Below, piece after piece: positions 920-46,528 of a stretch of DNA of 64,000 nucleotides. Position numbers and translations under genes: made by a program. The stretch spans positions 40,108-104,107 of the forward strand of contig NIVC01003252.1 of the NCBI GenBank assembly GCA_002269645.1, in the 5' to 3' direction. Numbering within the stretch: the first letter of the stretch is position 1; the number at the start of each line of letters is the position of its first letter. The notes beneath the pieces were generated by a model. It was given only the letters and a program-made list of their open reading frames with translations. It had not been told where the DNA came from and did no database searches. The stretch comes from Macrostomum lignano (taxonomy: Eukaryota).

Positions 920-1650
920 TCAGGCGTGCACGAAGAGAGTCCAGTTGGGTCCGGTCAGGCTGGCTGGCGGGTAGGCGAACGCCAGCAGGCGGCAGTCGAG
1001 CAGCCGCTTGGAGAAGACGACGGACGGCCTGGCAGTCGGCTCTGGCGCTGCACTTGGCCAGACAGTCCATGACGGATGGGGCATCGGCCGGCCAGGACGA
1101 TGTCTTGCTGTTCTCCAGAGTAAAGTTAGTATTCTCCAGTTTGCAGAAATTTTTTGTCTGAAGAAGATATTGTTTAAAAAACATCAGCAACTTTGAAAGG
1201 CAACTGCATAACCAAAGCAGCAACTTACTCTGGTAGGTCAGAGCGAACACAGAGTTGATGCTCGAGGCTCCGCACATCTGTAGCGGATTTCCCGTGCACT
1301 GCCTGTTGCACTGACTATCGCTGAGCTGTCCGTGGAGTCCATAGGAGGTGCTGCAGAAGCACTGCCGGCTGACCTGCACTCCAAAGTAAGGGAAGCCGCC
1401 CAGAGAACAGACGTTAGCACAGAACTCGTGTGACATGTTGCTGAGACTCTGAACTATGCCGGCTGAAGCGAAAACGGTGTTCGGCCCCAGCTTAGTCATT
1501 CCAAGTAGTCCGGTGTCAGGTCTCTGTTCGAGTTATCACCATCTTTGTAGCAACCGAAGTAGGAGATCTTCACCATCCGGCCAGCTGCACAGAACAAGGG
1601 AGCGCACAGCAATCCCGACTACCAAGAAAATACGCGTTGACAATTTTACA
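920..1650 (-). pseudogene. WSC + PAN/Apple secreted protein, copy A (disabled; closest to copy I)
   Basis: Reads GLLCAPLFCAAGRMVKISYFGCYKDGDNSNRDLT, then after a frameshift ...MSHEFCANVCSLGGFPYFGVQVSRQCFC...CGASSINSVFALTY. GTAAGT donor at 1228, CAG acceptor at 1160-1158, PAN exon DCLAKCSARADCQA...LAFAYPPASL, TGA at 922-920. Relative to copy I there is no ATG, a TAG in place of Gln, and indels at about 1505, 1150 and 1020. Confidence 0.85.
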
Positions 1651-1842
1651 GTATCTAAACTTATGTTTACAGCAAGTTTTTTTTTTAACCATTTCAGACG
1701 TCCGTGAAACTTTTAAAGCTTCTCCGGGTGAGCAGAGATTTTCCGCAGTTTTCTATCCAATCAGATTAGATCTAGAAAACATAGGCAGTCTATAGAAGGA
1801 TACAAATGAACAACTACTCGCTCGGCAAGCTTTTTCACCTTA

Positions 1843-2070
1843 AGGGCCAGATAAAGAATCCAGCTAATGGATGCAGACCAGATAAGAGTGGAAAGGCGAC
1901 GGAATAGAAAATTAGAGACGAGGTAAGCGAGGAGAAGCGAGAGGTGGGATGAGAGAAAAGATGGATGATAAGAGGAAAAAGGGAGAGAAAAGAGATGAAA
2001 GATGGGAGAGGAGAGGGGAGAGAGAGGAGAAGAGGGTAGAGAGGAGAAATGAGATTTGTACTTTTGTACC
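1843..2070 (-). repeat. Fragment of the CT-rich HINE-like family
   Basis: gggccagataaagaatccagc followed by a GA-rich tract resembles the reverse complement of about 4700-4850. Confidence 0.55.
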
Positions 2071-2984: not shown

Positions 2985-3966
2985 ACAAGCTGTTGAAACC
3001 CGCGGATTTTGAACCCGGGGAATTCCAATCCCCGGAACTACTTTTGCATGTATTCTGAAATCTAAGGTCATACACAAACAAAAACTTGTTAATAGTTAGT
3101 AGGATAGAGGTAGACATAAAATGGAGCACATTCGTGTAAAATTAGGGTTTGAGACATTGTTGGCTGGGGTACTGTGCAGAATGTCAGGCAATGTCTGTCT
3201 GACTCTAAAACATGTATTGGCAAACCCTGGCCTCTCCCTGACTCCCCCTATGTCCCTTGGATCCTTTAAAATTTCTATAGTCTCTTCTGTTTCCTCTCTT
3301 CTCTCTCGTCCCTCGTCTCTCCTCTCTCTTCTCTCCTCTCTTCTCTCATATCTTCCCTCATCTCTCTTCTCTTTCATCTCTCTTATCTCTTGTCTCTTCT
3401 CTCTACTCTTTCCTCTCTCTCTCCTCTCTACTTTTCGTTTTCTCTCTTCTCTCCTCTCTCCTGTCTCCTCTCTACTTTTCGTTTTCTCTCTCCTCTCCTC
3501 TCTCCTCTCTACTCTTTCCTTTTCTCTCTCCTCTCCTCTCTCCTATCTTCTTTCGTTTCTTCCCTCATCTCTCTTCTCTTTCATATCTCTTATCTCATCT
3601 CTTCCCTTTCGTTTTCTCTCTTCTTCTCTCTCCTCTCTCCCCCTCTTCTCTCGTCTCTTCCTTCTCCTCTCTATTCTTTTCTCTCTTCTCTTAACTCTCT
3701 CCTCTCTCCTCTCTACTCTTTCCTCTCTCTCTCCTTTCTCCCCTCTTCTATCGTCTCTTCTCTCACCTCTTTCCTCTCTCTCTTTCCTCTCATTTCTTTT
3801 CTTGTTTTATCTCTTCTCTCTCCCCTCGTCGCTCGTCTCTTCCCTCACCTCTCTTCTCTCTTGTCTGCGTTTTTATCTCTCCTTTCTCTTCTTTTATCTT
3901 TTCTCTCTTATCTCTTCTCGTTTCTCTCTGCTCTGCGCTCTCTCTATCTCTCTGTCTCTCTTTCTC

Positions 3967-4029
<63 letters not shown>

Positions 4030-6060
4030 TCTCCTCTCCCATCTCTCTTCTCCTCTCTACTCTCTCCCCTCTTCATTCTCCTATTTCCTCTTCTCTCTCC
4101 CTGTCTCTCCTCTCTCCTCTAGTCTCTGTAATCTCTTCTCTCTTATCTCTCCTCTGTTCTCTCTACTCTCCCATCTCTCGTCTGTTCACCCTCATCTCTG
4201 CTCTCTCATCTGTCATCTTTACTCTCTAATACGTTCTCTCACTTATTTCCTCTGTACTCTTCTCTTTCACCTCTTCAGACTCCTCTCTTTCCTTACTCCT
4301 CTCTTCTTTTCTCTTCCCTCTTCTATACTCTCTCTCCTCTATTATCTTCTCTCGTCTCTCTGCACTCTCCTCTCACCTTTTTCATCTCTCATCTCTCCTT
4401 TCATTTGTCTCATCTCTACAATCTCATCTCTCCTTTCTCCCCTCTTCTTACACCCCTCTCTTATCTCTATCTCTTCTCTTCTCACTCCTCTCTCCCCCTC
4501 TTATCTCCTCTCTTCTCTATCCTTTCTACTCTCTCCTCTCCTCTTGACCCTCTGTCATCTTCTTTCTGCTCTCTCATCTCTACTCTCTTCTCACTCTTCT
4601 CTACTCTCCTCTCGTCGATCCTCTGTCTCATCTCTCCCCTCTTCTCACCTTTACTCTTTCCTCTCCCTCCTTTCTCCCCTCCTCTCGCTTCTTCCTCCCT
4701 TCTTCTCTGCTCTCTCCTCATCACTTGTCTCTCCTCTTATCTTCGATTTTTTCTCTTATCCCCCTCTCGCCTCTCCTCTCTTCTAATAGTCTATTCCTTC
4801 TCCTTTCCACTCTCATCTGGCCCGCACATAAGCTGGATTCTTTATCTGGCTTTTGAAGTAAAAGTCTGCCGATCCCTGCTTCGAAAGCCAGTTTGTGGGA
4901 CGTACTACTCTGATAGTTGTTCTCATGCTTTGATCACGTCATCTTTCTTGCCAATTTGCAGCCCTGAAAGGAATTTGTGTATCTTCAGCTCCACTGCAGT
5001 CTGCATCAGTCTAACAACCAAGGAAATACGCATTTCTTAGGCCATTTAAATTTCAAAGTACTTTTAAGAGAAACTTAAAATTTCAATGGTGTGCCTAATT
5101 TAGTAGGGTTGTATTTCATTGCATCGCATCGCCTTTTCATAAATCTTTCGCTTTTACAAACCATGCTGGATTGCCTCGATTTGCCAATTGCCATCCACTG
5201 TTAAACTGCTGCAGAGTTTGCCTATACAGAGGGCAGGGCAGTGGTTAGAATTTCTCACTAAACTGTTATGGCTAAACGTAGCCTCTCCACTCTCGGGGTG
5301 CGAGATTGCGAGAAGGCTATAAATAAATTTATTCCAAAACACTTTACATTTGCTATGTACATTCAGTCCTATCGCCTGACCCTTCGTCTGGCTCTGGGGG
5401 AATGAGTGAGTGAGTGGCACAAACAACAGAAAAAGCAGACAAACTTCTTACAGTCCTTACTGTAAGTTCTTACTTCTTACAGTTTCTTTTTCGGTTGAGT
5501 TACAGAGTTGAAACTTTACATTTAGATAGAGAATGGGTCAATGAAGAATTGTGTCAAGTTTGAAGTCAATCGCTTCACGTGGAGCAAACTTATGGCAGCT
5601 GAAAGTTAGTCAATTTTGAAACCCTTTTACACATCTGGGCCCAGATCGGGAAAGAGAAGCAGGCGGGCGGAGGTTGGGGTGGTTGCTACGCTGAAAAAAA
5701 CAGCCTAAGTTTAAAAGTGCACAGCGCCGTTTAGGATTAACCTTGAGACTCGAAATTTTACACAATTATGTCAAAATAGTTGAAAATTGTCTGTGTCAAA
5801 TTTGAAGAGAATCAGTAGAAGTGGAGCGGCGCTATGGAGGATTAAGTGAAAAAATCGCGCATTTTGAGCTGTTTTTGCACTTTTAGGTGGGAAGACTCAA
5901 ATTTAGGAAATTTTAAGGTAGCCTATGACACTTTCCGTAGTGAATTTAGAGTGGGTGCAAAATTTGGTGTAATTTGGTTGAGCGGTTTGGGAGTCTATAG
6001 CGAAGATTTTTGTACACAGACAGACACACACACAGAGTTTTGATTTTTATAGTTAGAGAT
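2985..6060 (+). mobile_element. Non-autonomous Helentron/HINE-like element with about 1.5 kb internal polypyrimidine tract, copy 1
   Basis: 5' end acaagctgttgaaacccgcgg followed by hairpin ccgggga...tccccgg. 3' end has a (CAGA)/(CA) microsatellite then tttttatagttagagat before a T run, a layout like DINE-1/Lep1 HINEs. A near-identical inverted copy lies at 52759-55790. Confidence 0.65.
3255..4800 (+). repeat. CT-rich low-complexity tract including a perfect (TC)n at about 3975-4025
   Basis: Directly visible; source of the spurious S/L/F-rich ORFs. Confidence 0.95.
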
Positions 6061-6239
6061 TTTCAGTCCAAAATAGCAGCATTACAACTCACGTGTTGCG
6101 CTAAAAGGGGAACATGGCTCATGGCGTATTTTTCTGGTAAAATATTTTTTCTGGTAACATGATTCATTTAAGATTTAGGTGCGCATGCGTGTACTTGCTT
6201 ACTTACAGTAGCATCCTACGATTAACTTCCTTTTCCTTT

Positions 6240-6357: not shown

Positions 6358-8841
6358 TTCATTAACAAAGTTGCATTAGTAAACTTACATACTGAGCACA
6401 GCGCAGCTGATTTTCTCATTTATCAGACAGTGTAGACACTGTGAATTGATAAGCAAACCCGATCAGAACCAATGCATAAACCCTCAATTCATGGCCCCAT
6501 GGTTACTAGAATCCTTGGGTCTTTGGAAGGAGAGTCGCTGGTGCTACTCATTTCTTGTATTTGTGCATAGCCAGACAGTAATAAAATGGCACAAGATAGC
6601 TTAAAAACCTTGCTTTAAGCTTGCAGTCCTAAGTATGAATCCAGGAGTTGTCCTAGAAAAATGCAGCTGAAAATTATACTTGAGAATTCAGCAATTCAAC
6701 GATGGTTGAAAACATACCGTTTCTTCTATCTGCTAAGATGCAAAACTTTTGGTCTTACCAGCTCCGGGCAGCAAAGCTGTCTTCATTGTTGCGAAAGTTT
6801 GAAAATTCTCAGCTATTCAAAAACTTAAAAAATGGAGGAAAAGCAGCAGTCTTGAGGATAGAAAAAGTTGAGTATAGGTAATTTTTAAAGGTTCAACAAC
6901 TTTTTTACAGCTCCTGAACTCTCGCCCCTTCTTGTACCATCAATGAGCCAACTTCTTAGCTGAGTTCTCTGCAGCAGTCATTGTTCGATTGTTTCTCGAA
7001 GCTGCTAGCTTTACCTCTCTTCAAAGCATCTCTATCAAGCCGAAAAAGTTTAATCCCACTAGCAATTTTTATTTCTAAAATGCAATTAGCTGTTGGTTTG
7101 CGAGGATACCCTACATTTCAGAACAATGTCTTGTTACACTACCTGCTGTGCGAACTAGGCATGATACTGTTGCGCAGTCTACTCACTCGACAGTTCCTCA
7201 ACCATCGCGGCCTCCACACAATAAAACATCCATATACTAAAAATGGTGCTAATCTTGCTTGAAGACTATTCATTGTTTTTCCTGTTTCAAGCTGAGTGAG
7301 ACATTAAAAAGGTTCTTCTTGTTTTGTTTGCTCTGATTGTAAATTATGGTGAGTTTCTAACATTCTCTAGACTCTTCTCATCAGTAAAGGTGAAGTGACG
7401 TTGTGTGCCACCTTCGGCCAGCATTGTTTCAGTTCTCGGTGCAGCTGGATAATTTCTTTATCGAATATGGCAACTGCATCGAATAGGGCGACATGTGGAT
7501 GGGTGAGGTCAAAATTCTTTCAGCGCTCAAACTCTGTACCCAATACCGTTCAGCAAAGATTTTTTACACATTGAATATAAAATTTATTTCAGATGGCAGC
7601 AGCGTTTAGCGTTCAAGTGACGCCATTCAGTGACTCGACTACTCGACAAGTAGTATTTTCGCAACTGTACTTTTCAGTAAATTCCTAACTTATACCGTAT
7701 TAGTAAAGGAGAGCTAGACAAAAGACAGTCGAATCTGGAATGTTTAAAAAAAGGCTAGAGGATGCCCTATGGGTGAACATTATTCCCTCCTGTAATTGTT
7801 GCAACTAATTAGACAGGAATAAAAAAGTACATACCGGTATATTAGCGAGAAAAATTAAACGTGGGCAAACCTAGCAGCCACAAAAGGTCTAAATGTGCAC
7901 CCCGCCCCCCTCCCGCACACTGAAGGTGGTTAGCACTCGCGGGATCGTGCAAACCGATGCATACTATGTTATGTTCCTGTCGTGTTCAGCTGTTATGCTC
8001 GGTTCTTTACTCTCCTTCGTAGCTGAACTCTTCTAAGGCTCAACTGCAGGGACTCTAGAGCAGTCAGCGTGGATTTCTCCGTTTACGGCTGCTTCTGTCG
8101 CCACCGCTTCCTTCAGGGCCAGGTACCTGAGGAACGATTCATTTTTTGTTGCTCAGACAGTCAGAATACTACTTTTACTTGTAGGATACCATAGTCATTG
8201 GCCTACAAAACTATTTTAACGTCTACTCACCTACAAGTAAATTATATTTATGTGGAATATAATGCTTGGCCACCTGAAGCAGCAGGGTTTAATAGTCGAA
8301 TCGTTGCTTGTTGCGCACGTCATGCTCTGTGTGGTTAAAGGATGAAGCTGGTGAGTTCTTCAGCTAGCTATAGCAATTCTTGGCTTCCCATTGTGTACAG
8401 CTTAACGACACAACCGATGGTAGCATTCTGATGAAAATGTCTTTCTGACTTTCATGAAATGCATCGAAGAAGCCTTACCGTGACATCGCAACAACTAGTG
8501 GAACGGACGCGCCAAAGTGCCTCCACTTGAGGTTGGCTATCAGCACAATGAGCGCTGATAAGCCCATCTCTAAGAACGTGACCAAGCGTGTCTATGGGAA
8601 AAATCATTTTACGCTATGCCTGATATTTTCCCTACGAAGGTATGCATCATGGCTCGTTTATTGGCACGAGAAACTGCTAAGCGACTTGAACCGTTGCTTG
8701 TAAATGTATTCGCTTGACTCCCTTGATTCACTTGTGCATTAAACTGCATCCTAGTTACAGCACTTTTGTGAACTCCTTCTTGTAGCCAAATTACCTGCAA
8801 AAGCATTCATTGTTAAATGATACAAACAAGCTAGGAAGCTT

Positions 8842-10932
8842 GACTTACTTACTTGACTTAGCTGCAGGGGGCTCCGTGCGTCCGGAAACAGCGAGGGGGC
8901 GTTGCCGCCCATTTCGCTAACCCCTGGCAACCACGGGCAGCTAGTGCTGCGGTGTCGCGCAGGGAGTTCCGGTGGCGCCGGCGTCCGCAGCGCGGTCCCC
9001 TTCCGGAGAGTCCAGGAGGGGATTGTCGCTCGCCCGGTAGCCCTTAGGTAGCGGACGAGCTGGCAGAGATTCTCGGGCCTGAAAACGTCGGAGAGGTCCG
9101 GGTTTGGGCCGAGGTAGGTGAGCCTGTCCTGAGTAAAGGCGGGGCATTCACAGATGAAGTGCTCCGCATTCTCGACACCGGAGAGGCAGAAAGGGCATTC
9201 CTCACTGCGGATTTTCTCCTGGAGGTAACGATGCCTGGCAAAGCAGCCATGACCCGAGAGGGCCATGGTAACCGCCCTGATGTCCCTGCGGTTGAGTCCA
9301 AGCAGGGCCCTGCGTAGGGCGGAGGAGGGACAGGGGACAGCCGCGCAGGATTGCTGGCAGTCGGGGGCGTTAGCCTACCTATCCCTGTGCTTAGAAGCCA
9401 CCCACTGGTTGATCCGAGTGGTGACAAGGGCGATGGGGGTGGGGGCCACGGGCAGGGGACCAGTGAAAGAACCGGTCGAGCCAGCCTTGGCCAGGCGATC
9501 GGCCAGCTCGTTGCCGGGGTGGCCCGAATGCCCGGGGATCCACCTTAGGGACACCTTGTTGGAGGCGCCTAAGCGGTTGAGCTGCCCGATGCAGCCGAGG
9601 ACTGTATGCGAGCAGGTGGTGGTGCGCTCAAGGGCGTGAATCGCCGCTTGACTGTCCGAGTGGAGGGTAACTTCCTTCCCCCAGACGCGCTGAATGTACA
9701 GCTCCATGGCGCAGGAGCTGATGGCGAGAACTTCGTTCTGGAAGACGGTGGAGCAGGTGCCGGTGTGTTGGGAGAAGGTCGCCACAGTTCTCCTTCCAGA
9801 CACGATGCAGTAGCCGTATCCAGAGGCGGAGTTGATTTGGGACCCGTCAGTGAAGCAGTGGATTTCATGGGGTTTCCAGTTGTCTCTCGCTTCATGGCGT
9901 GGTGGAATGCTTGTTTTGAATTTGAGCGGGGGCAGAGCGTGGACGGGATTCCGTCCGAGAGGGTCAGCAGGCCTCTCGCTGCTTCCAGGTCTCGCAGGCT
10001 GAGGTCGCCATGCGGCCGGAGGTTCCGCTTTCTGAAGGCAAACTGCTTCTGGATTTGGACACCCGCGTCAAGCAGACGACATGTGGTTTTCATTGCCTCC
10101 CCTCTAACAAAGAGGTCGAGGGGGGAATGTCCAAGAAGGAGTTCATGCCAGCGAAGGGCGTTGAGGGAGCCGCGCTCATGATAGCTCGACAAGCGCGGCC
10201 TTGCACCCTATTTAAAACCTCAAGAACCCCTTTCACCTCTAGGGCACTGTTCCAAATGAAGCCGGCGAAGGAGATGGCCGGTCTAACAATGGCAGTGTAA
10301 ATCCACCAGAGGCGGCGGGGGGTGAGGCCCCAGGTAGCACCGAAAGCTCTGCGAATCTGCGCGAGAGTCGCGAGAGCTTTGCGGGCCTTGGTTTGGACGT
10401 GCGGGTTCCAGCTCAACCTGTGGTCGAGGGTGACGCCCAGACATCTAGTTTTTTTCTCCATGGCAACAGGTTTGCCAAAGAGGGAGAGCGGTTCGATCCT
10501 CCAGTTTCGGCGGCTGGTGAACATGATAGCCACGGTTTTAGACTCAGAGAACCTGAGACCGCAGCTTTGTGCCCAGCGCTCGGCACGGTGGATGAAGGCT
10601 TGAAGGAGGTCCCTGAGGACCGCGGGCGATGGTCCAGTCACAGTGGCGGTAACATCGTCCGCATAGCCGACCTTCTGAACAGGGTCCGGATGCGGGCTGC
10701 AAAGCAGCTCGTCCATGACTAAGTTCCAGAGGATCGGGCTGAGGACTCCACGTTGCGGTCCGCCTTTCTGGACTTCCACGGAGCGTGAGTGTGCCAGGAG
10801 GTGCGAGGTGGCAGTACGATGGGAGACCATGTACATAATCCAGCGGGTGAGGTGCTCGTGCGTGCCCCGGGATTCCAGGGCTCGCTTAAAGGCTTCAAAG
10901 AGCACATTGTTGAAAGCACCAATGTAAGCACC
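8842..10932 (-). mobile_element. 5'-truncated non-LTR retrotransposon (RT + RNase H + C-terminal Cys/His motif; LOA/I/R1-like), inactive
   Basis: RT motifs GAFNNV, GVLSPILWNLVMDELL and YADD. RNase H motifs FTDGS, HSDSQAA and WIPGHSGHPGNELADRLAK. C-terminal CPFC...EHFICECP and a (TAAG)-type 3' tail. 13-bp TSD agctaggaagctt at 8829-8841 and 10933-10945. Several frameshifts and a stop at 9375. Confidence 0.92.
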
Positions 10933-11427: not shown

Positions 11428-12254
11428 ATGCTGAAACTCTGCGCTCTGTTGCTCTGCTGGGCATTTGGCTCCGGACGCAGCGCCGCTGCTGCGGTGCCGC
11501 CTCAACCGCTGGAGTTTCGCCACCTCGGCTGCTACGTGGATGGCGCTGATGGCAACCGAGATCTTGCAGGACTGGAGGGTGTCGAAAATTTTGGAGAGTT
11601 TGAGACTCACCCACTCGCCCCAGCATTTGGTTACGATAGCGCCAAGATGACATTGGAAATGTGCAGCCAGATGTGCTCTTACGGCCGATTTCGCTACTTT
11701 GGAGTTCAGCATCATAAGTTCTGCTGCTGCGGCTCGGCCTACGGATCGAACGGCATCGCACCAGCTGGCAACTGCAGCTCAAATTGCAACGGAAACTCGT
11801 CTCTGATTTGCGGTGGAGCTTCAAGAAATTCCATCTACGAATTGACTTACTCACCAAGTAAGCGTTTCGGATTAACGCAGCTCGTAGCGCGCAAACGCAG
11901 GTTATGTGAATTTAGCGAAGGACGACCTAAGAAATGAGTTTTTTAACCAACAATATTCGAATACATTTGACCCATTAGGATAAAAATGTTTTCATCCACA
12001 TTTCCGCAGTCGATCCGGTGATGCCGAAACTGCCAGTGACGTCTCTGCCGAACATCACAACCTCCGCAAGCTCCATCACTCACCGCAGCATTGCAACCAG
12101 CAGTGCAGTTGAATGCGCCACCCTCTGCCACGGCAGCCCGGACTGTCAGGGCTGCGCCTTCGTGCCTTCGAGTCGCATGTGCCGCCTGCTGAGATTCGCC
12201 GCTGTGCCCGCTGAGCTGGCCAGCGACGCTGAGGGGGTCTGGATGAAGCTGTGA
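11428..12254 (+). CDS. Secreted WSC + PAN/Apple protein, copy B (exons 11428-11857, 12010-12254; about 224 aa)
   Basis: Signal peptide MLKLCALLLCWAFG and WSC motifs LGCYVD..., MTLEMCSQMC, YFGVQ..FCCCG, CGG..RNSIY. GTAAGC donor at 11858 and ccgcAG acceptor at 12009 join in phase 1. PAN motif ECATLCHGSPDCQGCAF...CRLLRF. Confidence 0.88.
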
Positions 12255-12370
12255 GGCTGAGTGGGTCTGGATGAAGCTGTGAGACGTAGTGGGTCTGGAT
12301 GAAGCTGTGAGACTGAGTGGGTCTGGATGAAGCTGTGAGGCTGAGTGACCGGTGGGATGAAGCTCCGAGT
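12235..12370 (+). repeat. 28-bp minisatellite (4 full + 1 degenerate unit) built from the last codons and stop of copy B
   Basis: Unit gggtctggatgaagctgtgaggctgagt at 12235, 12263, 12291 and 12319. Confidence 0.95.
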
Positions 12371-18118: not shown

Positions 18119-18126
18119 TATAAAAG
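18119..18126 (+). promoter_or_regulatory. TATA box of copy C
   Basis: TATAAAAG within the block ccaaccagatcgtttctagaaagccggTATAAAAG, which is conserved upstream of copies C, E, F and G. Confidence 0.6.
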
Positions 18127-33200: not shown

Positions 33201-33208
33201 TATAAAAG
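33201..33208 (+). promoter_or_regulatory. TATA box of copy F
   Basis: ccggTATAAAAG in the conserved upstream block. Confidence 0.6.
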
Positions 33209-33284
33209 AAGAAAAGTCATTTTCATATTTTGCTACACTCATATGAGCAGCAGCAGAACTGAAATCCCATCTGCTAAAGTAACT

Positions 33285-34000
33285 ATGCTGAAGACCATCA
33301 CCTGCATTGTGGGTCTCGCCGTCCCGGTGCTTTGTGTTGCCGGTAGAGTAACTCTGATGTCCTACATTGGCTGCTATATAGACGGTGAGACTAGAGACAT
33401 GAAAGGACTCTCTGGAGTGAGCAGAATTGGACAGTTTAGCACGTCCGGCATCGCTGTGAGCAGTGCAAGCAGTATGACGCACGAGCTCTGCAGCAGCGTC
33501 TGCTCTCTGGGCGGCTTCCCGTACTTCGGTATTCAGATCGGTGAGCAGTGCATGTGCAGCACATCCTACGGATCTCTGGGAGCTGCTAGCGAGACCGACT
33601 GCAACCGCGTTTGCACTGGGAACGGAGCTTCTAAATGCGGAGGCCCGTGGCGCAATTCCGTATTTGCTTTGACCTATCCGAGTAAGTTTTTATTACAACG
33701 TTTTTATTAGAGTTTTCACATGTAATTTCGGCACATTTTGTAAAAGTTTGTGTAATTCTTTTAGAGAAACAGTACTTTGAGCAGTCGCAGAGGCCCACCC
33801 AGACGGTGGAGTCCATCCACAGCACCTACTGGACCAGCGCTGCCCGAACCGACATCGAGTGCATGGGGCTGTGCGAGGCCTCAGCTGCCTGCCAGGCTGT
33901 GATTTTCGCTGGCCAGCAGCGCCTGTGCCACCTACTGAGGTTCGCCTACCCGCCTGCCAGTTTGGGCAGCACCGATGGAGACTTCTTTGCTCGTGGCTGA
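33285..34000 (+). CDS. Secreted WSC + PAN/Apple protein, copy F (exons 33285-33681, 33765-34000; about 210 aa; in-frame upstream ATG at 33243)
   Basis: Signal peptide, WSC domain, 83-nt GTAAGT...ttttAG phase-1 intron, PAN motif ECMGLCEASAACQAVIF...CHLLRF. Confidence 0.9.
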
Positions 34001-35619: not shown

Positions 35620-35912
35620 TAGTGCCTGGGGTGCTAAAATGAGTGCCTGGGGCGCAAAATAAGTACCTGGGGCGCTAAAATGAGTGCATGCGGCGCTAAA
35701 ATGAGTGCATGCGGCGCTAAAATGAGTGCCTGGGGCGCTAAAATGAGTGCATGCGGCGCTAAAATGAGTGCATGCGGCGCTAAAATGAGTGCATGCGGCG
35801 CTAAAATGAGTGCATGCGGCGCTAAAATGAGTGCATGCGGCGTCAAAATGAGTCCCTGTGGCGCTAAAATGAGTGCCTGCGGCGCTAAAATGAGTGCCTG
35901 CGGCGCTTTACA
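35620..35912 (+). repeat. 21-bp minisatellite, about 14 copies
   Basis: Unit gagtgcatgcggcgctaaaat; source of the spurious GAKMSAC and ALILAPH ORFs. Confidence 0.95.
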
Positions 35913-36054
35913 GAATGAGTGGTGACAAGAGTACATTGAGCTCATTAGTGCACTGGATTTTATTAAACCAGATCGTTTCTAAAAAGCCTATACAAAAACA
36001 CAAAGATAAGTTTTCATCTTTTAGCAGAGCTGAATCCCATCTACCCAAGTAACT

Positions 36055-36255
36055 ATGCTCAAAACCATAGTCTGCATTGTGGGTCTCGCCGTCCCAGTGC
36101 TTTGTGCTGCCCGTAGAATAACTCAGGTGTCCTACATTGGCTGCTATGTAGACGGTGAGGCTTGAAACATGAAAGTACTCACTAGAGTGAGCAGAATCGG
36201 ACGGTTTAGCATCGACGGCCCCGATGTGGGAAGTACGAGTATGACGCTGACGCTT
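36055..36255 (+). pseudogene. WSC + PAN copy G, 3'-truncated
   Basis: MLKTIVCIVGLAVPVLCAARRITQVSYIGCYVDGEA*NMKVLTRVSRIGRFSIDGPDVGSTSMT; TGA at 36163; homology ends before the first WSC CxxxC. Confidence 0.85.
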
Positions 36256-36579
36256 GAGAAGCCACTGATACGTCTAGGGCATACGATCTGTGGTCTAAGG
36301 TAGACTTGAAGACAGTTTCACAATATACATGTGACACTGTACTTGTACTTTGCTAAATTTAATTGTTTTAAATTTATAAAAAGTCACTCAAGATATCCCA
36401 TGAATGCGATCTTCGTACTCAAAAGCCGATGCTTACTTTTTGATTGCCTGATGGAAAACTTTACATCTGTTTATGGAAATAACGATCGAAATTGAATCTT
36501 ATATATTTAATGACTCAACGACAACGACTGTGAACTACACACTTTCTTCAACTTTTTCCAGTTGGAGCATCTTAGACTT

Positions 36580-36662
36580 CCAGCTTCATCAAGACTCAGT
36601 CAGCCTCACAGTTTCATCCAGACCCAGTCAGCCTCCCAGCTTCATCCAGACCCACTCAGCCT
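36580..36662 (-). repeat. 28-bp minisatellite (3 units) at the stop codon of copy H
   Basis: Same unit as 12235-12370, in reverse complement. Confidence 0.85.
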
Positions 36663-37384
36663 CGCTGGCCACCTCAGTGGGCACAGCGGTGAACCTCAGC
36701 AGCTGGCATATGCGGTTCGAAGACACAAAGGCGCAGCCCTGACAGTCCGCTATCTGGTAGCAGGCGGCAGCGCACTCGATCGCACTCATAGCAAAGACGC
36801 TGCGGTGGGTGATGAAGCTTGAGTAAGCCGTGATGGCAGGCATTGCAGCGACCTTTGTCTTCAACATCGAATGGTCAACTGCGGGTAATAGTTTTTTTCG
36901 TGGTTGCCGTTTAAAGTGTCATTTCACAGGGCATTCTGCCATTTCCCAGCTATTCCGGCTTACCAGTCTCGTAAATGGCTTCGTAGATTGAGTTTCGATA
37001 GGTGCCGCCGCACAGCTGCTCAGAATTTCCACCGCATTCGGTCTGACATTCGCTGGCAGGCGCGGCACCCAGAGAGCCGTAGGCGGAGCCGCAGCTGCAG
37101 TAAATTCCGTTCTGAGCTCCGAAGTAGTGAAAGCGGCCATAGGCGCAGATCTTAGCGCACATCTGCAGCGTCATGGCGGTCTCTCTGACCACAGCTGGAT
37201 AGCCAGATACCGTAGCGAACGGACCAACCGTGACAATCCCGACCAAACCGCGCAGGTCCCGGCTGTAGCCGCTGCTGTCAATAAAACAGCCGATGTGATT
37301 TATGGTCACCACATTTTGCTGTACTGCGACACCAACTCTGGTCCAAATCAGAAGGAAAATGAGTTGACCAGCTTTCGACAGCAT
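36628..37384 (-). CDS. Secreted WSC + PAN/Apple protein, copy H (exons 37384-36964, 36878-36628; about 223 aa; closest to copy B)
   Basis: Signal peptide MLSKAGQLIFLLIWTRVGVA, WSC domain, 85-nt GTAAGC...ccgcAG phase-1 intron, PAN motif ECAAACYQIADCQGCAF...CQLLRF; TATAAAAG at 37443-37436. Confidence 0.9.
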
Positions 37385-40300
37385 TTTATCTTTAAAAAGG
37401 AGGGAGCGCTTTGTTTTCAGTTGGATTGTCAATGACTTTTATATTCATCGTTGTGCCTGTAACCATGGAATTAATTTCTAGATGCATAGGTCCACTGGCC
37501 TATTGTCCCACACCATAGGGAGGCTGTTGGCTCAAGACTCTAGCACGATTTTTCTTCATGCCGTTCCTGTTGTGTAGGTCACGATTGCTTCATAATTTCC
37601 AGAAATCAGCTTCTAAACAAAGCTTGAAGCGGATTAAAACAGCAAGAGATTTTCTTCCGGTATTTTTTACTTTCAAAACAAGACCACCAGTTTTTTTCAG
37701 GTGTTTACAGGGCTTCTCCGCGTCAAACGTGAATTTAAACGCTGCAAGATTTTATTTATTTATAGGGACTAAAACTGAAGCTGTTGTACACTGTTTTTGT
37801 GCAGTGGGTAGCACGTAAAATCTACTACTACTGCAAACCCATGCAGGTTAGAAGAAAACCCTAAGCAAAGATTGATGACAAGCCTTGCCGATTCTATACA
37901 AAAATTCTGATCCCAGGGCACTTGCTGTATTGACGTGGTGCAATAAACCATTCACAAGACAATTACATCATAGCCCGGTCGATAAACATACGCAAAATTG
38001 CATTGGAAGCTCGCCTCCCACCGGCTTGTCTTCTCTACCAGCCAATCGTACCAGACAGTACTCATACTCTCAAAGAGCGAGGCTAAATACTAATATATAT
38101 TACTTGAAAATCTTCAAAGAATTCTGGCGCTCTGCTAAGATATAATGTCTTAGAGTAAACTTCACTTAACCATTCTGGCAAATGAATTTTCAGCGCAAAT
38201 TCAATGCTGCTACTCAGTAGTAATATAAGCGCTCTGGAAATTTAAGAAAAGAGAAGCCGAAAATTTGAGAATCAGAAGCGCGATTAACAAGAATAGACGT
38301 AATTCAGAAGTAATTGCTTTTATATAAATATACGCAAAGTTCGGTCAAGATGAGTTGTTAAGTATTTTTAAGTATCATTTGAATGTATGTGCTTTTTATA
38401 ATGTATCCTGCGTTCCTGGAAAGTATCCATTAATTATTTTAGTCAGTGTTTATTCAGTAGTGCGTTTTCTTTTCCGCGATACATACTGTACGTACTTTAT
38501 TGCAATTGTTTTACTGTATGTTAATTCCTATTGTATTTGAAACGCGAATGCGCTGTGTTTGGTGTTAGGGTTCCTAGGCGCCGTGGTAGTTGTAGAGTAG
38601 CGTAGTCATTCCAGAATTCGAGTCCATCCAGTTTAAATAAAATATCATATTTTACTGCACAAATAGATTATAAAAATATATATGAAATAAATTAAGGCGC
38701 ATTTCACCCACCAAGCAAGGACGCATTCCTTCATTCATCTGTCATCACAACGAATATTGTTTAAATTTTTCGACTTTAAGGAAGTTTATTTTACAGAGTT
38801 ACAATTCAAATTTAATTCTTCAAATGAGGTTTAGCTAGTTTATTATCTGCTATGATCGAATTCTTGATACGATATATATTTACCTTTTTTAAGTAGCAAA
38901 ACACTGTTTGATAAACTTTGTACTAGTTTTGTACTGACTTACGTGTATAAAATACACTAATAATCCAAATAAGGCAAATCCTGCAAACTGATAATTCAGA
39001 CACTTATTGGTCCTTGAAGACAGCCATCAGAAATTATGGCGGGATATTGTCAAAGCAATTCCCGGCCCCATAAGCCTGAAAATCTCATCAATTCCTCCCA
39101 TGAGCCACAGCATTTTAATAATTACCCAATGAACCTCGACAATTCATGAATTCCCCATGACATCTTAGCAATTCAACCCATAAGCCTTAACCACTCAGCA
39201 TTTCACTTTCTCTGAAGAAAGCCAAAAAGTTTTATTTTATGGGTGACTGACATGGCACTTTTTAGGCTTGCCATGGCGCAGTTTTAAGAAGTAAAAATGC
39301 AGAAAGCCACTGTTAATGCCGAATTCTGGGCAATTCTGGGCGATTCTCAATTATTCTTATAATTTACAAGAAACTGCAGCAGAAATCAAACGGTTTTAAC
39401 AGAGCCTATCGAGACCTACGAGATCGAAGCGAATGAGCCTAGAAAAGTTGTCGGCGAGAGGAAGTGGCAACAGGAGGAAATGCTGCTTTCCTGGTTCAGC
39501 CACGGCCAACAAGCGAAGAAATGTACGAGTATTTTTAGCTGGGGCAAACAATGTCCGCTCCTTGTCGCACAGATCTGAAAGGAGGGAAGCCTATAGAATC
39601 GGCATCAGCTTCGCAGCTTCCTGAGAAAAAAACCTTCTCTCTCGCGGCTTAATTGTCAGAGAGACAAAGATTCGGAGCGAAGACACAAAACAATTTCCGT
39701 TGATTGTCTTGTAAGAAGCAAGAAGATGGAGCAATAATTTTTAGCTCGCAGCAGTCGGAGTGGCTGAGCTCAGGCTGAACTGCTTTGCTCAGCCCAGTGT
39801 TCAAAGTGAGTCAAAATTCACAGTAGCCAAAACCTGAAATGAAAAATAGAAACAGGACCAAGCAATCAAGCAGTCTTATTTAAACAAAATATGTAGTTCT
39901 TAGCCTACATAATTACTTATACTATGGTAAATAAAAAGCGCGTTCTTTAAGAACTTCACAAGGGCGCTAGAATAATTCAAAGTGACGATGACGATCCTCG
40001 AATGAGCAGGCTGTCGCGATTGGAGCCGCAGTGTGGGATACTTTTTATGGGCCAATCGCTCATGAGCTCGATGATGCTCAGGTGAAAGCAGCGAAGATGA
40101 CCGAGAGGAAGGTAGAGTTTTTAGTATCCAGGAGCATGTTGAGCTGTCTGCAACTGCATAAAGTCAAAATATTAATGAAAATTTCAAGTGCGCTATTTGG
40201 ATTTCGAATACAAAAACTTTTAGAAAATTTTGAGAATCTGAACTATAGAACGGAATTTACTGATAAGTCAATTGTATTCCTGACCTGAAAACGATCGATA

Positions 40301-40577
40301 CAATAAAATTGTTAAAATTTGCATCCATTTGCATATAAAACAAGCAAATTTTGTTTTTTTGGAAGAGCTAGCTCATATCAAAAAGAAAGTATGGTCAAGA
40401 GTTGCTCTCAAAATTTGGGATATTCTTTCTGTTTATTCATAGATGAGCGTACAGAGCATTATTTTATATGTACATACATCATACATAATTAAAGCTTGAA
40501 TGCTGGTAGAGTCGCTCGCTTGGCGAGAAGAATAAATAGAAAGCTTAATATCAACATTTGAGTGTGATTTCAATTTC

Positions 40578-40629
40578 TAACAACTTCAACGCGTTTCGCA
40601 CGCCATGGTGCATCGTCAGGATTTTATTA
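40578..40629 (-). ncRNA. Minimal hammerhead ribozyme motif (left arm)
   Basis: Reverse complement of the motif at 41561-41612. Confidence 0.6.
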
Positions 40630-41560
40630 GAACGATTTGAGAAATTGAGATTGAAAGCGATTGATAAATATTGGTTTTTGCAACGTACACAGGTAAGAAA
40701 GGTAAGATTGAAAACAATTGATTACAACTTGGCTTTAACAACATACATAGGTATAGTAGGTAGGAGAGAGAATTATACTCGTAGATTGAGATTGAAAGTT
40801 AAACCAAATGTACACAATTCTTGTCCAGTGGTCAAAAGGCAGAATCAGGGGCGGTAGCTAGCTTAGGTAATTGAACGTCAAGCTAAGTGTACACAGCGTG
40901 CACGACTGTGTCACTCACTGTTCAGAAAACGCGGAGAACGTGACCTGCACCACTATGTTGTAATTGGGTGTTGAGATTCGGGGTCTGAGCTTTTATGTGC
41001 AGGGCCTCGAGAATTCTAAGTTTGGCGTCAGTATGGCTTTGGTCAATGATTTTAAAGTGTTCTTCTGGTTTGCAGTCTCACCTCACAAACTCACCTCCTT
41101 GAATGCACTAACTGCAATGACTGCAAACCAGAAGAACACTTTAAAATCATTGACCAAAGCCATACTGACGCCAAACTTAGAATTCTCGAGGCCCTGCACA
41201 TAAAAGCTCAGACCCCGAATCTCAACACCCAATTACAACATAGTGGTGCAGGTCACGTTCTCCGCGTTTTCTGAACAGTGAGTGACACAGTCGTGCACGC
41301 TGTGTACACTTAGCTTGACGTTCAATTACCTAAGCTAGCTACCGCCCCTGATTCTGCCTTTTGACCACTGGACAAGAATTGTGTACATTTGGTTTAACTT
41401 TCATTCTCAATCTATAATTCTCTCTCCTACCTACTATACCTATGTATGTTGTTAAAGCCAAGTTGTAATCAATTGTTTTCAATCTTACCCTTCTTACCTG
41501 TGTACGTTGCAAAAACCAATATTTATCAATCGCTTTCAATCTCAATTTCTCAAATCGTTC

Positions 41561-41612
41561 TAATAAAATCCTGACGATGCACCATGGCGTGCGAAACGCG
41601 TTGAAGTTGTTA
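41561..41612 (+). ncRNA. Minimal type I hammerhead ribozyme motif (right arm)
   Basis: CUGACGA, an extra U, stem II GCAC/GUGC with loop CAUGGC, GAAA, palindromic ACGCGU stem III and a GUU cleavage triplet; helix I is weak. Minimal hammerheads are an established feature of Penelope-like pseudo-LTRs. Confidence 0.6.
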
Positions 41613-43336
41613 GAAATTGAAATCACACTCAAATGTTGATATTAAGCTTTCTAATTAAAGCTTGCTTTACATGCGTTTACGAGCGTAGGCTCACACCATT
41701 CAGATAGTGCTTTCAGATGAGTTTAGTCCCAATTATTCTTATCACACCCGTTATTTAAAGACTAATTGATTCCAGGGGAATGACAAATTAATTAATTTTC
41801 CCTCCTAAAATTAAAATGTCAATCAGTCGTGTACATTTTGATGCCTTTTCAGTCTCATTCAACGCTCCTTCTACCGCCCTTGAGTATTCTTGTATTGTCC
41901 CACATTATCCTACTAAGCGATGCAGTGCTTATCTTCCATTTTTATCGGCGATTGGCGGCCCGAAACTACCCGTTGCTCGATTACGACGTTAAGTCGGTAG
42001 GACCGATCGCTTGAACGGCGCCTCGCTGAGGAAGGCTGCACCAGTGCGCCCAGTCGCGTGCTAAGTTTGTGGGTGTGTCCTGGTGCATCAGATTCCGGCA
42101 TTTTTGAGAACTCGCAAACAGCCGAATGCCAGCAAGGACTCCTCATGACTCAATACCGCCGCACTCTGTATGCCCTACCGCACCACTGAGCCCAAAGATT
42201 CAAGAATTCAAAATGGGGCTTTCAATGAAAATAAAGAGCCAATCAAAATAAGATTAAAAACAGAGGGAAGAAGCACGGCTGGGACATTTGAGCATTCAAG
42301 TTTCTCAGTCGGATGACGGACAAGGTGGTCCATGGTTTAAAGGCTCGAAAACTTCGACTTCAACACGACAGCTCCAATCTACCCCAACATTCCTTTAGAT
42401 GCCATACAGTCGATATACAGCTGAAGCCGTCTCTTAGCTCTGTTAAAAATACACGGATAATATTATGATAAAATAAGATATTAGGAACTATAAATGATAA
42501 TAATAAGTGAAACACTGAAAGACCTAGCTGATAAATATCGGCAGGTCTGTATCTAAACATCACCATAACTTATTTAACATCCTAGAGCGACGGACACTCC
42601 TTGCATTGCACCGGACCGTCATCTTTGCTCACACCAAAGAAAAGCTAGTTGAATGAATATACTACAGCTACTCCAAGGCAGATGAAGAAATCTGTAGATC
42701 ATTGCATGATTTATAATGATCAGCAGCAATAAGGAGTCGAATTTTTGTTGCTAGATATCAATTTCTACAACCTAATTCTGAGTCAAGCTTTACATCTTCC
42801 TTTTTTCTGAATCCTGATCCGCAGAAAAGTCTCCGTGCTCTGAAAATAAATTAATGGGCTCGCCTCGAAAAAAATCACTTTTACATTGTGCACTGTACTA
42901 ACTCGAACTCTAAAGTTTATAGTTCAGTTCTTCTTAATCCTGCTGGGTGTTATGAGCAACAGGCTAAGAGGAAATTTTTAATTCACAGCAGATCTTCTAA
43001 TAATCTTAGGATTTTTCTTTGTTCAACTATTTTTCAATTATCCTTTTAAAATTGCAAAGAAGCAAAACAATTAAAATATATTTTTTCAGAGTTTTTTAAA
43101 GCCAGGCTTTCATGATAGTTTACCATTTGTTTTGCAAATTCACCGTAAGGACTTACGTCTTCATGCTTTATTTCGAATAAAAGATGTTATAATAGCAACT
43201 TGAGGCTAGTAACAAGCCGCACTGTATTTGACGCACTCATTTTCAGAGGATATTAAGGTGTGAGTCAGTGTTTATTCATAGTTTTAAAATCGTCCTTGAT
43301 CATTAAGAGTCGTCCAAAAAGTCATCGCGTTGTTTC

Positions 43337-44040
43337 TCAGCCACGCTGGTAAAGATTCGAGTCGGGTCCGGTCAGGCTGGCTGGCGGGTAGGCGAACGCC
43401 AGCAGGTGGCAGGCGAGCAGCCGCTTGGAGAAGACGGCGGCCTGGCAGTCGGCGCTGGCGCTGCACTTGGCCAGGCAGTGCATGACGGATGGGGTAGCGG
43501 CCGGCCAGAACGAGGTCTTGCTTGTCTCCACAGTGAGGGCGGAATTCTTCAACAGATTGTAGAAATTGTTTTCTGAAATGGATTTGTTTAGAAATTTCTT
43601 TGTATTAATATTTGTGGTAAAAATTTTCAATATATTTTAACATTACTCGGGTAGGCCAAAGAGAAAATGGAGCTGGTGCCGAAACCTCCGCAAGTCTGCA
43701 GCGAGTTTCCAGCGCACTGCATGTCGCACTTGCTATCGTCAAGTTTTCCATGTAATCCATAGCTTGTGCCGCAGAAGCACTGCTCGCTGAACTGCACTCC
43801 GAAGTAGGGGAAGCCGCCCAGAGAACAGACGTCGCTGCAGAATTCGAGCGACATGTCACCGTTATTTATTATGCCGATATTAGCATCAATGGTGTACAGC
43901 CCAAGCCTGCTCACTCCTTTCAGCGCGGTCAAGTCTCTGTTAGAGTTGTCACCGTCTTGGTAGCATCCGACGTACGAGATTTGAGCAACCCTGCCTGCAC
44001 CACAGGTCAGTAGAGCGCACAGCAACAGTGACTGAAACAT
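43337..44040 (-). CDS. Secreted WSC + PAN/Apple protein, copy I (exons 44040-43647, 43572-43337; about 209 aa; alternative ATG at 44052)
   Basis: Signal peptide MFQSLLLCALLTCGAG, WSC domain, 74-nt GTAATG...tttcAG phase-1 intron, PAN motif HCLAKCSASADCQAAVF...CHLLAF; TATAAAAG at 44126-44119. Confidence 0.9.
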
Positions 44041-46528
44041 GCATATGCTCATTGAGAAGAGCAACTGGCTTTAATTTTTAAGCAAAGTAGTTTAATGCAT
44101 CTCAAGGCGTGTGTTACTCTTTTATAGTTTAGTGAGTACTGGCAGCAGTAATTAGCTGCTTAATTTTTATCCAATCAGCTTTAAGATCGCAGTTTTTTAC
44201 AACAGATAGAAACTAGACGAAGGTATTTGCCATGTTAAGTACTGATTATGACCTAGTTTGGTATTTGTGGCTATTTTAACAGCTAGAAAGCAGATCAACG
44301 TAAACTATAAACATCTGATCTCAGATCTGACTGCTGTTGTTGCGGTTTTTGTGGTAAAATGAGACTGAGAACTGCTTTTAGATAAAAACAGGCGGCATTG
44401 TAGTGTAAACTCACTATGACTTTTATTTTTTGTCCCAGAGGTCTCCATAGTTTTGATAACTTGAGAATTCTAAGCTCTGGGGTCAATGGTGACGTTATCA
44501 AGCAGCAGCTCTCGTATTTGTGCCGTTTCGGCCCTAGGAAGCATAGACATATTTCTATTGTGTCATACTTCGCGGGCCGCATCATTTCATTTCGGCCCGC
44601 TTCTAGATGCAGGGCTAAGCTAAGTATGCAGTTTTCGATATACCATCTTTACCATAGACTATAATCCCGGGCCGAATCGTTGTTTCTGCCCGCAGCGTGG
44701 CTGAGTTCAAAAACTGGGGTGGGGGCTTCGCCCCTACATTTAAACCATAGATAAAATCAACCAGAGTCTGACAAAAGTTAAGTAGTGGATATCAGAATTC
44801 TTCTCATTCTGAATTTAACTTCGTTTTTTGTCAACCTGCTGAGCTAGAGAAAAATGATCAATTTGTCAAGAATTGCGACTATAGATATCTCCGGACTTGA
44901 CACTCTATGGATGAAATCAAGGCTGTAACAGGTCAGTGTATTGTTTTTGTAGTGTGCTAATTTATAGATTATATAAGCATCACTCTAAAGAAACCGATTT
45001 TTTGTAGGTCATCGCTGCGATGAATCCGTCAATCGATACACCAAGCGCATCTCTGAGAAGAGAAAGATCCAGGTTTCTCGCAGTCTTACGGAGGCATTGC
45101 ACTCAGAGTCGAAGATTTCGAAGGTGGTTTTAATGGAGTACCGCCAGACGGAGTACAATGAGCCTGGTTCGTCGCGCAACCCAATAGCTACTCTGGATAA
45201 GGATGGAGCTAAAATTAGCTTTTTTCTTTTATAGAGGCAAGCGGTGAATGGAAGCAAGATATGAACCTGAAACGGACAATTAATTTTCCTACATTGTCAC
45301 ATTAATTTTCTACATTTAATGGTTATTTGTTACAACTTTTAAGTATACGTTAATTACGAGTACATATGTTATACTCAATCGTTCTGGTAAAAGTTTGGCC
45401 ATTTAATAGCCTCACATATCTTCATTTCGGCCCGCGATATGGCCTGCGAAATCTAGACACAATAAACACCTAATTACATTCACACAGTTTCATCCTTGTA
45501 ATTTCAGTTATTTGCTTGTAAACATTTTAGCTCGATGTATGCAGCTACGAGCAGCAGATCGAAACTACAGAAATTTTTTGCTTCCACACATCGTTAACGT
45601 TAACGTTGTAAGCAACGTTGTCAGCAATTTATTTTGATACTTCCAGCTGCAATGCGTGCATTTTCTACAGCTAATTTTAGGACGATTCTGAATATTAACA
45701 TTACTATTATAAGATGTGTATACTAAACTAGAAATTAACTAATTGTTACAATATGCGTTGAAGATATTCAGAGTTTCAGCAAAAGCTGAAAGCGAACATC
45801 TATAGACTTTGAATAAAGCGAAAAATTCAGGCGGCTAAAATTGTGCATTGAACGAGCTAAAGACATTAGTGGACGTTGGGTTGTGGACGTTTTTAGACGT
45901 CAGTTTCCTACGTCTGACGATTTTAAACGTCAAAAATCGTTAAAACTTTCAACGCAGCTATTTGCGTGGTGCATCTGAAGGCTGCGTACGGCTGTTGTGG
46001 ACCATGCCTAGGTTCCAAGCCTCCCCCCCCTCAGTTTGGTTGGCTTTTTTAGCGCGAAGCGGACGGCCTTGATCACGCCAAATGGCGCAACGATTCGTAA
46101 TTCAATCTGCACTAGTTTTTGCCCTGCTCGGTTATAGTGCGTTATGCACTTGTTTTTTGCCCTCCTACCCATTGTCTCGGGTGGCCTCCCCGGTGACCAG
46201 TTCTGGCTGGTTAGGGATAAGTGCTCTGGCCCTTTGTTTGAGCCGTCCCCCCCCCCCGCGGCCTGATTGGTCGTTCGACTGTTTTAGCTGCGCTGGGCAG
46301 CTCCGATTGGCTAGGCGAGGCTTCCCTCTCTGTCACTTACCTCTTTTTCTCTGTCCAAGCTGGTTTGGCGGTATTTATGCGTCCCATTTTACTTAAAAAA
46401 GGCTCTCGCTCGCCGCTCTCGCCATTTTCCTTGCTGCGATTGTATTCCTGTGTTTGTTAAGCGACAAAACCAAAAATAAACAGACGAAGCGCGGAGAAAG
46501 CTTGACAGAGATTAGAGAATATATTCAG

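Follow-up and report, generated by a model that had tools for sequence, protein, structure and literature searches.

A stretch of 64,000 nucleotides (nt) of the Macrostomum lignano genome (GenBank assembly GCA_002269645.1, contig NIVC01003252.1, positions 40,108 to 104,107), referred to here as the window and numbered from its first letter, contains a cluster of nine related loci with WSC and PAN coding sequences, five of them open and four disabled. As a whole, these observations are best explained by a multigene family, known to date only from Macrostomum, whose products are small secreted proteins with two binding modules and for which a setting in male reproduction is favored. We put the probability of this explanation at about 60%.

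The cluster was delimited by a tblastn search of the window, in which the WSC and PAN exons of three copies served as queries. Nine WSC/PAN loci were recovered across 43 kb, with E-values from 1e-20 to 1e-98. These are copy A (920-1612, minus strand), a pseudogene of the A/I subfamily; the open genes B (11428-12254, plus) and C (18166-18926, plus); copy D (24743-26219, plus), which is disabled; copy E (28540-29242, plus), a probable pseudogene; the open gene F (33243-34000, plus); copy G (36023-36280, plus), which retains only the 5' part of the WSC exon; and the open genes H (36628-37384, minus) and I (43337-44052, minus). Copies B to G all lie in one orientation. A sequence-only reading of this DNA had listed nine paralogues at the same coordinates, five open and four disabled, and had divided them into the subfamilies A/I, B/H, C/E/F/G, and D. 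The tblastn search, together with the reading and splicing of the DNA, bore out both the positions and the count: B, C, F, H, and I splice open, and A, D, E, and G carry lesions. The subfamilies likewise match the identities between the copies. Scans of the window for Rfam families and tRNAs gave no match.

After splicing, uninterrupted two-exon coding sequences of 224 (B), 225 (C), 224 (F), 223 (H), and 213 (I) amino acids (aa) were obtained. The first exon encodes the signal-like N-terminus and the WSC module, and the second the PAN module; they are located at 11428-11857 and 12010-12254 in B, at 18166-18607 and 18691-18926 in C, at 33243-33681 and 33765-34000 in F, and, on the minus strand, at 36964-37384 and 36628-36878 in H and at 43647-44052 and 43337-43572 in I. 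The introns measure 152, 83, 83, 85, and 74 nt in B, C, F, H, and I, respectively, and all of them are phase 1. They begin with a GTAAGT, GTAAGC, or GTAATG donor and end with a YAG acceptor (GTAAGC..CAG in B, GTAAGT..TAG in C, and GTAATG..CAG in I), and their position is constant, one base past the codon that follows ..TY (..TYP/TYS/YET). Genes C and F have an additional in-frame ATG upstream of the start that is conserved in the family, which is the second ATG of C, at 18208 (MLRT..), and lies at 33285 in F. Two relatives, P0002 and P0003, begin at MLKT, and because the gene of P0003, at locus L002 (contig NIVC01000045.1), has no in-frame ATG upstream, the methionine of MLKT/MLRT was taken as the conserved start. 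A TATAAAA box is found 47 nt upstream of the first ATG of C (18119-18125, plus), and equivalent boxes precede F (33201-33207, plus), H (37437-37443, minus), and I (44120-44126, minus). At the other end of gene B, a 28-nt tandem repeat (12228-12347; 4.3 copies, 92% matches) begins inside the last codons and the stop. Each of its units encodes ..GVWMKL-stop, and a homologous stretch is present past gene H (36581-36835), so that slippage of the repeat could alter the C-terminus of the B/H subfamily.

None of these five genes corresponds to a separate entry in the public annotation. GenBank locus L001 of this contig is 100% identical to positions 8217-44000 of the window, and the only gene annotated in these 35.8 kb is BOX15_Mlig003596g1 (Mlig003596.g1). 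The model of its protein (P0001), which is marked partial, connects the first exon of C with the second exon of F over 15.8 kb (18166-34000). Accordingly, P0001 has C-specific residues in the WSC module and F-specific residues in the PAN module. The GenBank model at this locus is wrong, and B, C, F, H, and I are left without annotation of their own. The simplest explanation of Mlig003596.g1 is that transcript assembly produced a chimera, given that the mRNAs of C and F would share about 160 identical nt across the junction. It could also be argued that the cluster is transcribed as one combinatorial unit, WSC exons being able to splice to PAN exons that lie downstream of them. Such cross-unit splicing would produce the join over 15.8 kb seen in the GenBank model, and any join would be in frame, since B to G have the same orientation and all introns are phase 1. 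We regard it as very improbable, however: the 160 nt or so of identity are enough to give a chimera in de novo assembly, each unit has a TATA box of its own and its own PAN exon 69-152 nt downstream, and the relatives found elsewhere are compact two-exon genes. The exon junction of the window genes is also that of the GenBank proteins P0001 to P0004 and P0012, which we take to be transcript-derived models (Mlig_3_7 annotation). When P0001 and P0003 were searched in the Logan assemblies, they matched genome contigs only and no transcript contigs.

The two modules were assessed against the Pfam gathering scores of 27.8 bits for WSC (PF01822) and 21.4 bits for PAN_1 (PF00024). All five intact proteins exceeded the former, with 44.6-62.8 bits (44.6 in B, 48.9 in H, and 62.8 in I), and B, C, and I exceeded the latter, with 24.4, 22.3, and 23.8 bits, respectively. 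Among 15 relatives, WSC was detected in every one and PAN_1 in 12 at E<0.01. In each intact copy, the WSC module contains eight cysteines between GCY and CGG, the latter at residues 121-133. The PAN module shows the spacing C-x3-C-x5-C-x11-C in all copies, H included; only these four cysteines are conserved, and B and H have a fifth, unpaired one. When a profile of the PAN exon was compared with the PDB sequences, the top ranks were all PAN/apple proteins: Sarcocystis SML-2 (0.006) and a Colletotrichum copper oxidase with PAN domains (0.03), and further down Toxoplasma MIC4 (TgMIC4; 0.09) and the HGF N domain (0.14). With the PAN-only profile, a word-seeded database search yielded just one match and was not informative.

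The structure was modeled on the relative P0002, which is about 95% identical to F by eye and 84% identical to C. A first AlphaFold model, built on a 15-sequence alignment, had a predicted local distance difference test score (pLDDT) of 37 and was discarded. With 28 family sequences, AlphaFold2 reached a pLDDT of 78.3 and a predicted template modeling score (pTM) of 0.64, and the PAN module scored 85-94. In a Foldseek comparison with the PDB, the WSC side matched Kremen1 (5fwv; E 2.6e-5), a glyoxal oxidase with WSC (FgGLOX 9n3u), and yeast Wsc1 (ScWsc1 7pz2; TM(target) 0.78, root mean square deviation 3.8). Ranked next were SML-2, HGF/NK1, MIC4, plasminogen, and the apple domains of factor XI, with a probability of 0.9-1.0 for SML-2, HGF N, and the plasminogen PAN. 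The structure of yeast Wsc1 has shown that WSC is itself a PAN/apple fold, that two helix-to-sheet disulfides are common to both, and that two extra disulfides of WSC hold the long loop containing CGG (PMC9024836). On this basis, the protein is most aptly regarded as two PAN-fold modules in tandem, the first WSC-type and the second minimal. Because the outer N-to-C disulfide is absent, the minimal module falls short of a true six-cysteine apple domain of the factor XI/prekallikrein kind. The makeup of WSC plus PAN that had been read from the sequence is thus confirmed by Pfam, by the PDB profile matches, and by fold, although the two modules are not unrelated to each other, as the Wsc1 structure and Foldseek both place WSC in the PAN fold.

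In B, C, F, H, and I, hydrophobic 19-mer windows occur at the N-terminus only and are followed by small residues at positions -3 and -1 before RV/VQ, a pattern that would fit a cleaved signal peptide and a protein without a membrane anchor. The proteins end about 25 residues past the last PAN cysteine, and a Pfam scan of the five at E<=1 found only WSC and PAN, with no sulfotransferase, kringle, or CUB domain. The spliced models, Pfam, and hydrophobicity therefore agree with the shared architecture proposed from the sequence, namely a signal-like N-terminus, a WSC exon, a phase-1 intron, a four-cysteine PAN exon, and no transmembrane segment.

This combination sets the family apart from the proteins that resemble it most. 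Kremen1 and Kremen2 provide the best match to the WSC module in both sequence and fold (PDB 5fws-5fww) and illustrate that in animals a WSC domain may have protein, and not just glycan, as its ligand; however, they are transmembrane Dickkopf receptors of kringle-WSC-CUB composition, while the proteins described here are secreted, have two modules, and contain none of these additional elements. Fungal WSC proteins (the cell-wall sensors Wsc1-3, the beta-glucan lectin SiWSC3, and the WSC glyoxal oxidases) share the eight-cysteine WSC fold with CGG and have a carbohydrate-binding role (PMC9024836), but they have a Ser/Thr-rich stalk and a transmembrane segment (followed by a cytoplasmic tail in the Wsc-type sensors), WSC repeats, or a catalytic domain, all of which are lacking in the family. 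In WSCD1/2, a sulfotransferase domain follows the WSC domains, and the family has no sulfotransferase match. The PAN module, in turn, has the two core disulfides of PAN/apple lectins and modules such as SML-2, MIC4, Eimeria MIC5, the N domain of HGF and plasminogen, and the factor XI apple, but differs from them in having four cysteines only, no outer disulfide, a single copy fused to WSC, and less than 25% identity. CBEL of oomycetes, a secreted adhesive lectin with two repeats of CBM1 plus PAN/apple, belongs to an unrelated lineage and offers an analogy only to the WSC-PAN arrangement.

The four disabled copies differ in the extent of their decay. Copy A, on the minus strand, is 72-83% identical to I in DNA and still has a recognizable WSC exon (about 1229-1612), a 71-nt intron (1158-1228), and a PAN exon (about 920-1157). 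Its ATG is missing, a stop interrupts the signal region, and the frame is shifted at least three times, by +2 nt near 1516, by +1 nt where exon 2 starts, and by +4 nt near 1027. Copy D has in-frame stops at 24770, 24791, 25004, and 25088 in its WSC exon (24743-25148, plus), which is separated by an 820-nt phase-1 intron (GTGAGT..CAG) from an open PAN exon (25969-26219, plus). Copy E (plus) is 88-94% identical to F and consists of exon 1 (28540-28936), a 69-nt intron, and exon 2 (29006-29242); one extra nt (+1) is inserted at 29069 within the PAN exon, the donor is weakened to GTGGGT, the TATA box is changed from TATAAAA to TATGAAA at 28453, and a conserved histidine is lost (CHLL to CLLL). It is a probable pseudogene, its sole coding lesion being a 1-nt indel in a long-read assembly. 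All that is left of copy G is roughly the initial 230 nt of exon 1 of the C type; a TGA interrupts it at 36163, and homology stops near 36250. Directly upstream of G is a 21-nt minisatellite (35621-35907, 13.7 copies), and the same unit is found at L002 (12440-12690), between two tandem genes of the family, so that the minisatellite seems to travel with the duplication unit.

Divergence between the copies points to more than one age. Between the A/I, B/H, and C-type lineages, synonymous divergence (dS) is 0.9-2.2, which is saturated, and the ratio of nonsynonymous to synonymous divergence (dN/dS) is 0.3-0.5. Within C/E/F/G, dS is about 0.13-0.23, with 0.165 for C-F (dN/dS 0.66) and 0.127 for F-E. 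On these values, the subfamily lineages are old and constrained and the C/E/F/G burst is recent; the constraint is deduced from the fact that all 12 cysteines and the open reading frames (ORFs) were kept across dS>1 with a dN/dS of 0.3-0.5. For whole genes, pairwise dN/dS is 0.3-0.7 and below 1 in every comparison. The birth-and-death dynamics proposed for the cluster are therefore upheld by a dS ranging from 0.13 to more than 2, by the four disabled copies, and by the transposons between units, with gene conversion superimposed. The rapid turnover that had also been proposed applies to the C/E/F/G burst only, the A/I, B/H, and C-type lineages being of old age and under constraint. A different interpretation of the dead copies, four of nine, is that the cluster is merely decaying and that the apparently intact copies are also nonfunctional remnants, and a search for exact-sequence transcript contigs of relatives outside the genome assembly found none. 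This is highly improbable, because five ORFs have been preserved with their cysteines, splice sites, and TATA boxes across a dS of 0.9-2.2 at a dN/dS of 0.3-0.5, and because in E, the only dead copy that is recent, the TATA box and a conserved histidine are gone already.

Gene conversion was indicated by mosaics of dS that differ between segments and run in opposite directions in two gene pairs. The duplicated units are short, about 1.1 kb for C/F and, for E/F, 0.6 kb more upstream. Between C and F, identity is 94-100% in the signal region, 50-90% over the N-terminal half of WSC, and again 94-100% from the WSC exon's 3' part across the intron into the PAN exon, and the two genes are identical from about 18485 to about 18725, intron included. 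Their dS is 0 in the C-terminal half of WSC vs. 0.34 in the N-terminal half, and the pair P0003/P0004 at L002 shows the reverse mosaic, 0.02 vs. 0.63. The N-terminal half of WSC, which holds an inserted variable loop, has the highest dN/dS (0.44-0.76). In one pair, the value for this half is 2.96, which stems from only one synonymous and 10 nonsynonymous changes. Positive selection was rejected as a demonstrated feature, since the segment dS of 0-0.9 points to gene-conversion mosaics. Also rejected was a palindromic origin of the A-B...H-I order: B and H are mutually inverted, but A and I have the same orientation.

The family extends well beyond the window. Its best database matches are all M. 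lignano proteins. When 1.84 billion cluster representatives were scanned exhaustively with a HMMER profile, WSC matches numbered in the thousands; among the matches listed whose source was looked up, all those with both modules were from M. lignano. In a word-seeded profile search, 28 of the 29 strong matches came from this species, and the full-length M. lignano relatives found in these two very large protein searches group at 90% identity into about 29 clusters. L002 holds a further tandem pair of copies, with 3.5 kb between them, which have the TATA box, exon structure, and phase-1 intron of the window genes. Older M. lignano annotation includes long models with four to six WSC and five PAN domains (PAN_1 100-104 bits), and because these look like fused tandem arrays, similar clusters would exist elsewhere in the genome. 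Two older models from outside the window have WSC-PAN fused to a mucolipin/polycystin-type channel (P0167) and to a protein-kinase fragment (P0147), both of which are probably gene-model fusions.

Mlig003596.g1, Mlig011376.g1, and Mlig012529.g1 were assigned by Brand et al. (2020) to the orthogroup OG0000005; statements on this orthogroup refer to the part of that data set that was accessible. It comprises 92 transcripts with a mean divergence of 0.92, of which 37 are M. lignano genes; M. spirale and M. hystrix supply the rest, and M. pusillum is not represented in that part. Mlig016881.g1 lies outside OG0000005, and the family thus spans several orthogroups. Judging from the databases searched, the family has apparently been found so far only in Macrostomum. 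The suggestion that it is unnamed and undescribed stands to the extent that neither a name nor a functional study of the WSC-PAN family was found in the literature; its proteins, however, are already in UniProt and GenBank as "WSC domain-containing" or "Apple domain-containing," and in OG0000005.

In the explanation that we favor, removal of the signal peptide would leave mature proteins of about 190 aa, with no catalytic domain and no membrane anchor, that would act outside the cell as soluble, lectin-like binders of glycans or proteins. Because each chain has two binding modules, the proteins could bridge glycans or glycoproteins or coat them, and most of the difference between paralogues would lie in the variable N-terminal half of WSC. 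The setting might be, for example, a sperm-associated or testis-secreted coat expressed in the testis or germline. The male reproductive setting is favored because the positional labels of OG0000005 (Brand et al. 2020) are Non-Specific, Other, and Testes, together with germline_FACS, and do not include Tail, the region class into which prostate transcripts fall. These labels favor the reproductive option weakly, and they point to the testis and not to a secretion of an accessory gland. A male-germline or testis-associated role is accordingly a weak preference, well short of an even chance, and is followed by an immune or mucus role and, in third place, by a role in prostate seminal fluid.

According to the second of these, the proteins would be somatic pattern-recognition or mucus lectins of the epidermis, gut, or glands that bind microbial or environmental glycans. 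Fungal WSC domains bind beta-glucan (cited in PMC9024836), the PAN matches SML-2 and MIC4 have been solved as lectins with galactose ligands, and invertebrate immune lectins typically show tandem expansion, together with pseudogenes and a surface segment that varies. In addition, most members of OG0000005 are labeled Non-Specific or Other, and a second secreted ORF with PAN and C-type-lectin-like parts lies 7 kb away. Nevertheless, the testis and germline labels of the orthogroup are not predicted by such a role, and dN/dS was below 1 in all whole-gene pairwise comparisons, so that we consider it unlikely. The ORF in question (51262-52104, plus) is a single exon of 280 aa with a signal-like stretch from M29. 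It reaches 16.5 bits for PAN_1, below the cut-off, and E=0.001 for the Eimeria MIC5 apple in the PDB, and a weak PAN-like tblastn match falls at 51487-51585. Its C-terminal half has weak matches to C-type lectins (codakine, E=0.016; SIGNR1; mosGCTL-1) and none in Pfam. From these matches, it is predicted to be a second kind of secreted PAN-containing, lectin-like gene.

A role in prostate seminal fluid deserves attention because about 25 transcripts among the 76 that are limited to the prostate in M. lignano match WSC-domain proteins (PMC5977470 Table S1), and RNA interference (RNAi) of some of them alters sperm competitiveness or partner behavior. One of them, Mlig-pro46, is described as WSCD2-like. 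The WSC candidates in this set are Mlig-pro4, 11, 23, 28, 38, 46, 49, and 63 (Weber et al. 2018, PMC5977470; PMC6953679). They resemble the family in being small, secreted, fast-diverging, and reproduction-linked proteins of the same species, encoded by multicopy tandem loci (e.g., Mlig021499.g3-g10), but they are expressed in the tail and prostate, while the orthogroup of the family has testis and germline labels and, in the accessible data, no Tail-labeled member. A WSC plus PAN architecture has not been reported for the Mlig-pro set, in which RNA815_80.4 has two WSC domains. Furthermore, none of the 36 primers of the 18 RNAi-tested Mlig-pro genes matches the window within four mismatches, and none of the listed Mlig gene IDs coincides with a family member found. 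Identity with these 18 seminal-fluid genes was therefore rejected; the comparison covers these 18 primer-listed genes out of the 76 Mlig-pro transcripts. Overall, a prostate function for the cluster seems quite doubtful, more so than an immune or mucus one.

Several points weigh against the explanation given at the outset, that of a Macrostomum family of secreted two-module binders with a male reproductive setting. The signal peptides were called by simple rules (hydrophobicity and the residues at -3/-1), and PAN_1 is below the cut-off in F (20.1 bits) and H (18.3 bits). From the chimeric public model, it does not follow that C and F are both expressed in their predicted form. The expression labels apply to the orthogroup and are not specific to B, C, F, H, or I; the testis and germline labels need just one of the 37 M. 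lignano members, most of which are Non-Specific or Other, and the A/I and B/H subfamilies may fall outside OG0000005, as P0003 and P0012 do in the accessible data. The gene IDs of the family were found neither in the main texts of the literature searched nor in the supplements of Grudniewska 2018. Proteomic work on M. lignano sperm or seminal fluid did not turn up in the literature search, nor could a cell atlas of the species be identified among the matches listed.

The remainder of the window is rich in repeats and mobile elements. Between A and B are pieces of the long interspersed nuclear element (LINE) type (8750-10905, minus), with reverse transcriptase and RNase H ORFs, and another LINE-type piece (60877-63528), with an endonuclease-domain ORF, lies in the GC-rich end of the window (0.55-0.65). 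Between C and D, an open 553-aa ORF (21764-23425, minus) encodes a piggyBac-type transposase (DDE_Tnp_1_7, 230 bits) with a C-terminal zinc finger and may be an active or domesticated element. The cluster is bracketed by an inverted repeat of about 3.1 kb (2985-6061 vs. 52758-55788, 91%), of which a partial third copy is found at 46529-47913; each copy holds a low-complexity, CT/GA-rich array of about 1.3 kb with 7/14-nt periods. A near-perfect palindrome at 40533-41657, the arms of which are 96% identical, contains mirrored ORFs of 97-99 aa without an identified domain.

Much of what this cluster represents is already familiar. The modules are known, and the lineage-specific expansion of small, disulfide-rich, lectin-like modules through tandem duplication, gene conversion, and decay is of an ordinary kind that would not surprise a specialist. 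The practical gain is the correction of a chimeric GenBank model, along with five clean gene models and four pseudogenes that are missing from the public annotation. A bolder version of our explanation is that the proteins are male-germline-expressed, diversifying, bivalent PAN-fold lectins that coat sperm or act in the reproductive tract of the partner, perhaps even with combinatorial isoforms that join exon 1 of C to exon 2 of F. We consider this version unlikely; if true, gene conversion and duplication would shuffle the variable WSC surface, and the family would be a molecular substrate of sperm-female or sperm-egg recognition and of sexual conflict in a hermaphrodite. The species serves as a model in research on sexual selection, regeneration, and bioadhesion, and, given the possible link to the testis, the family provides candidates for recognition at the sperm surface or in the reproductive tract, which would complement the known excess of WSC proteins in the prostate secretion.

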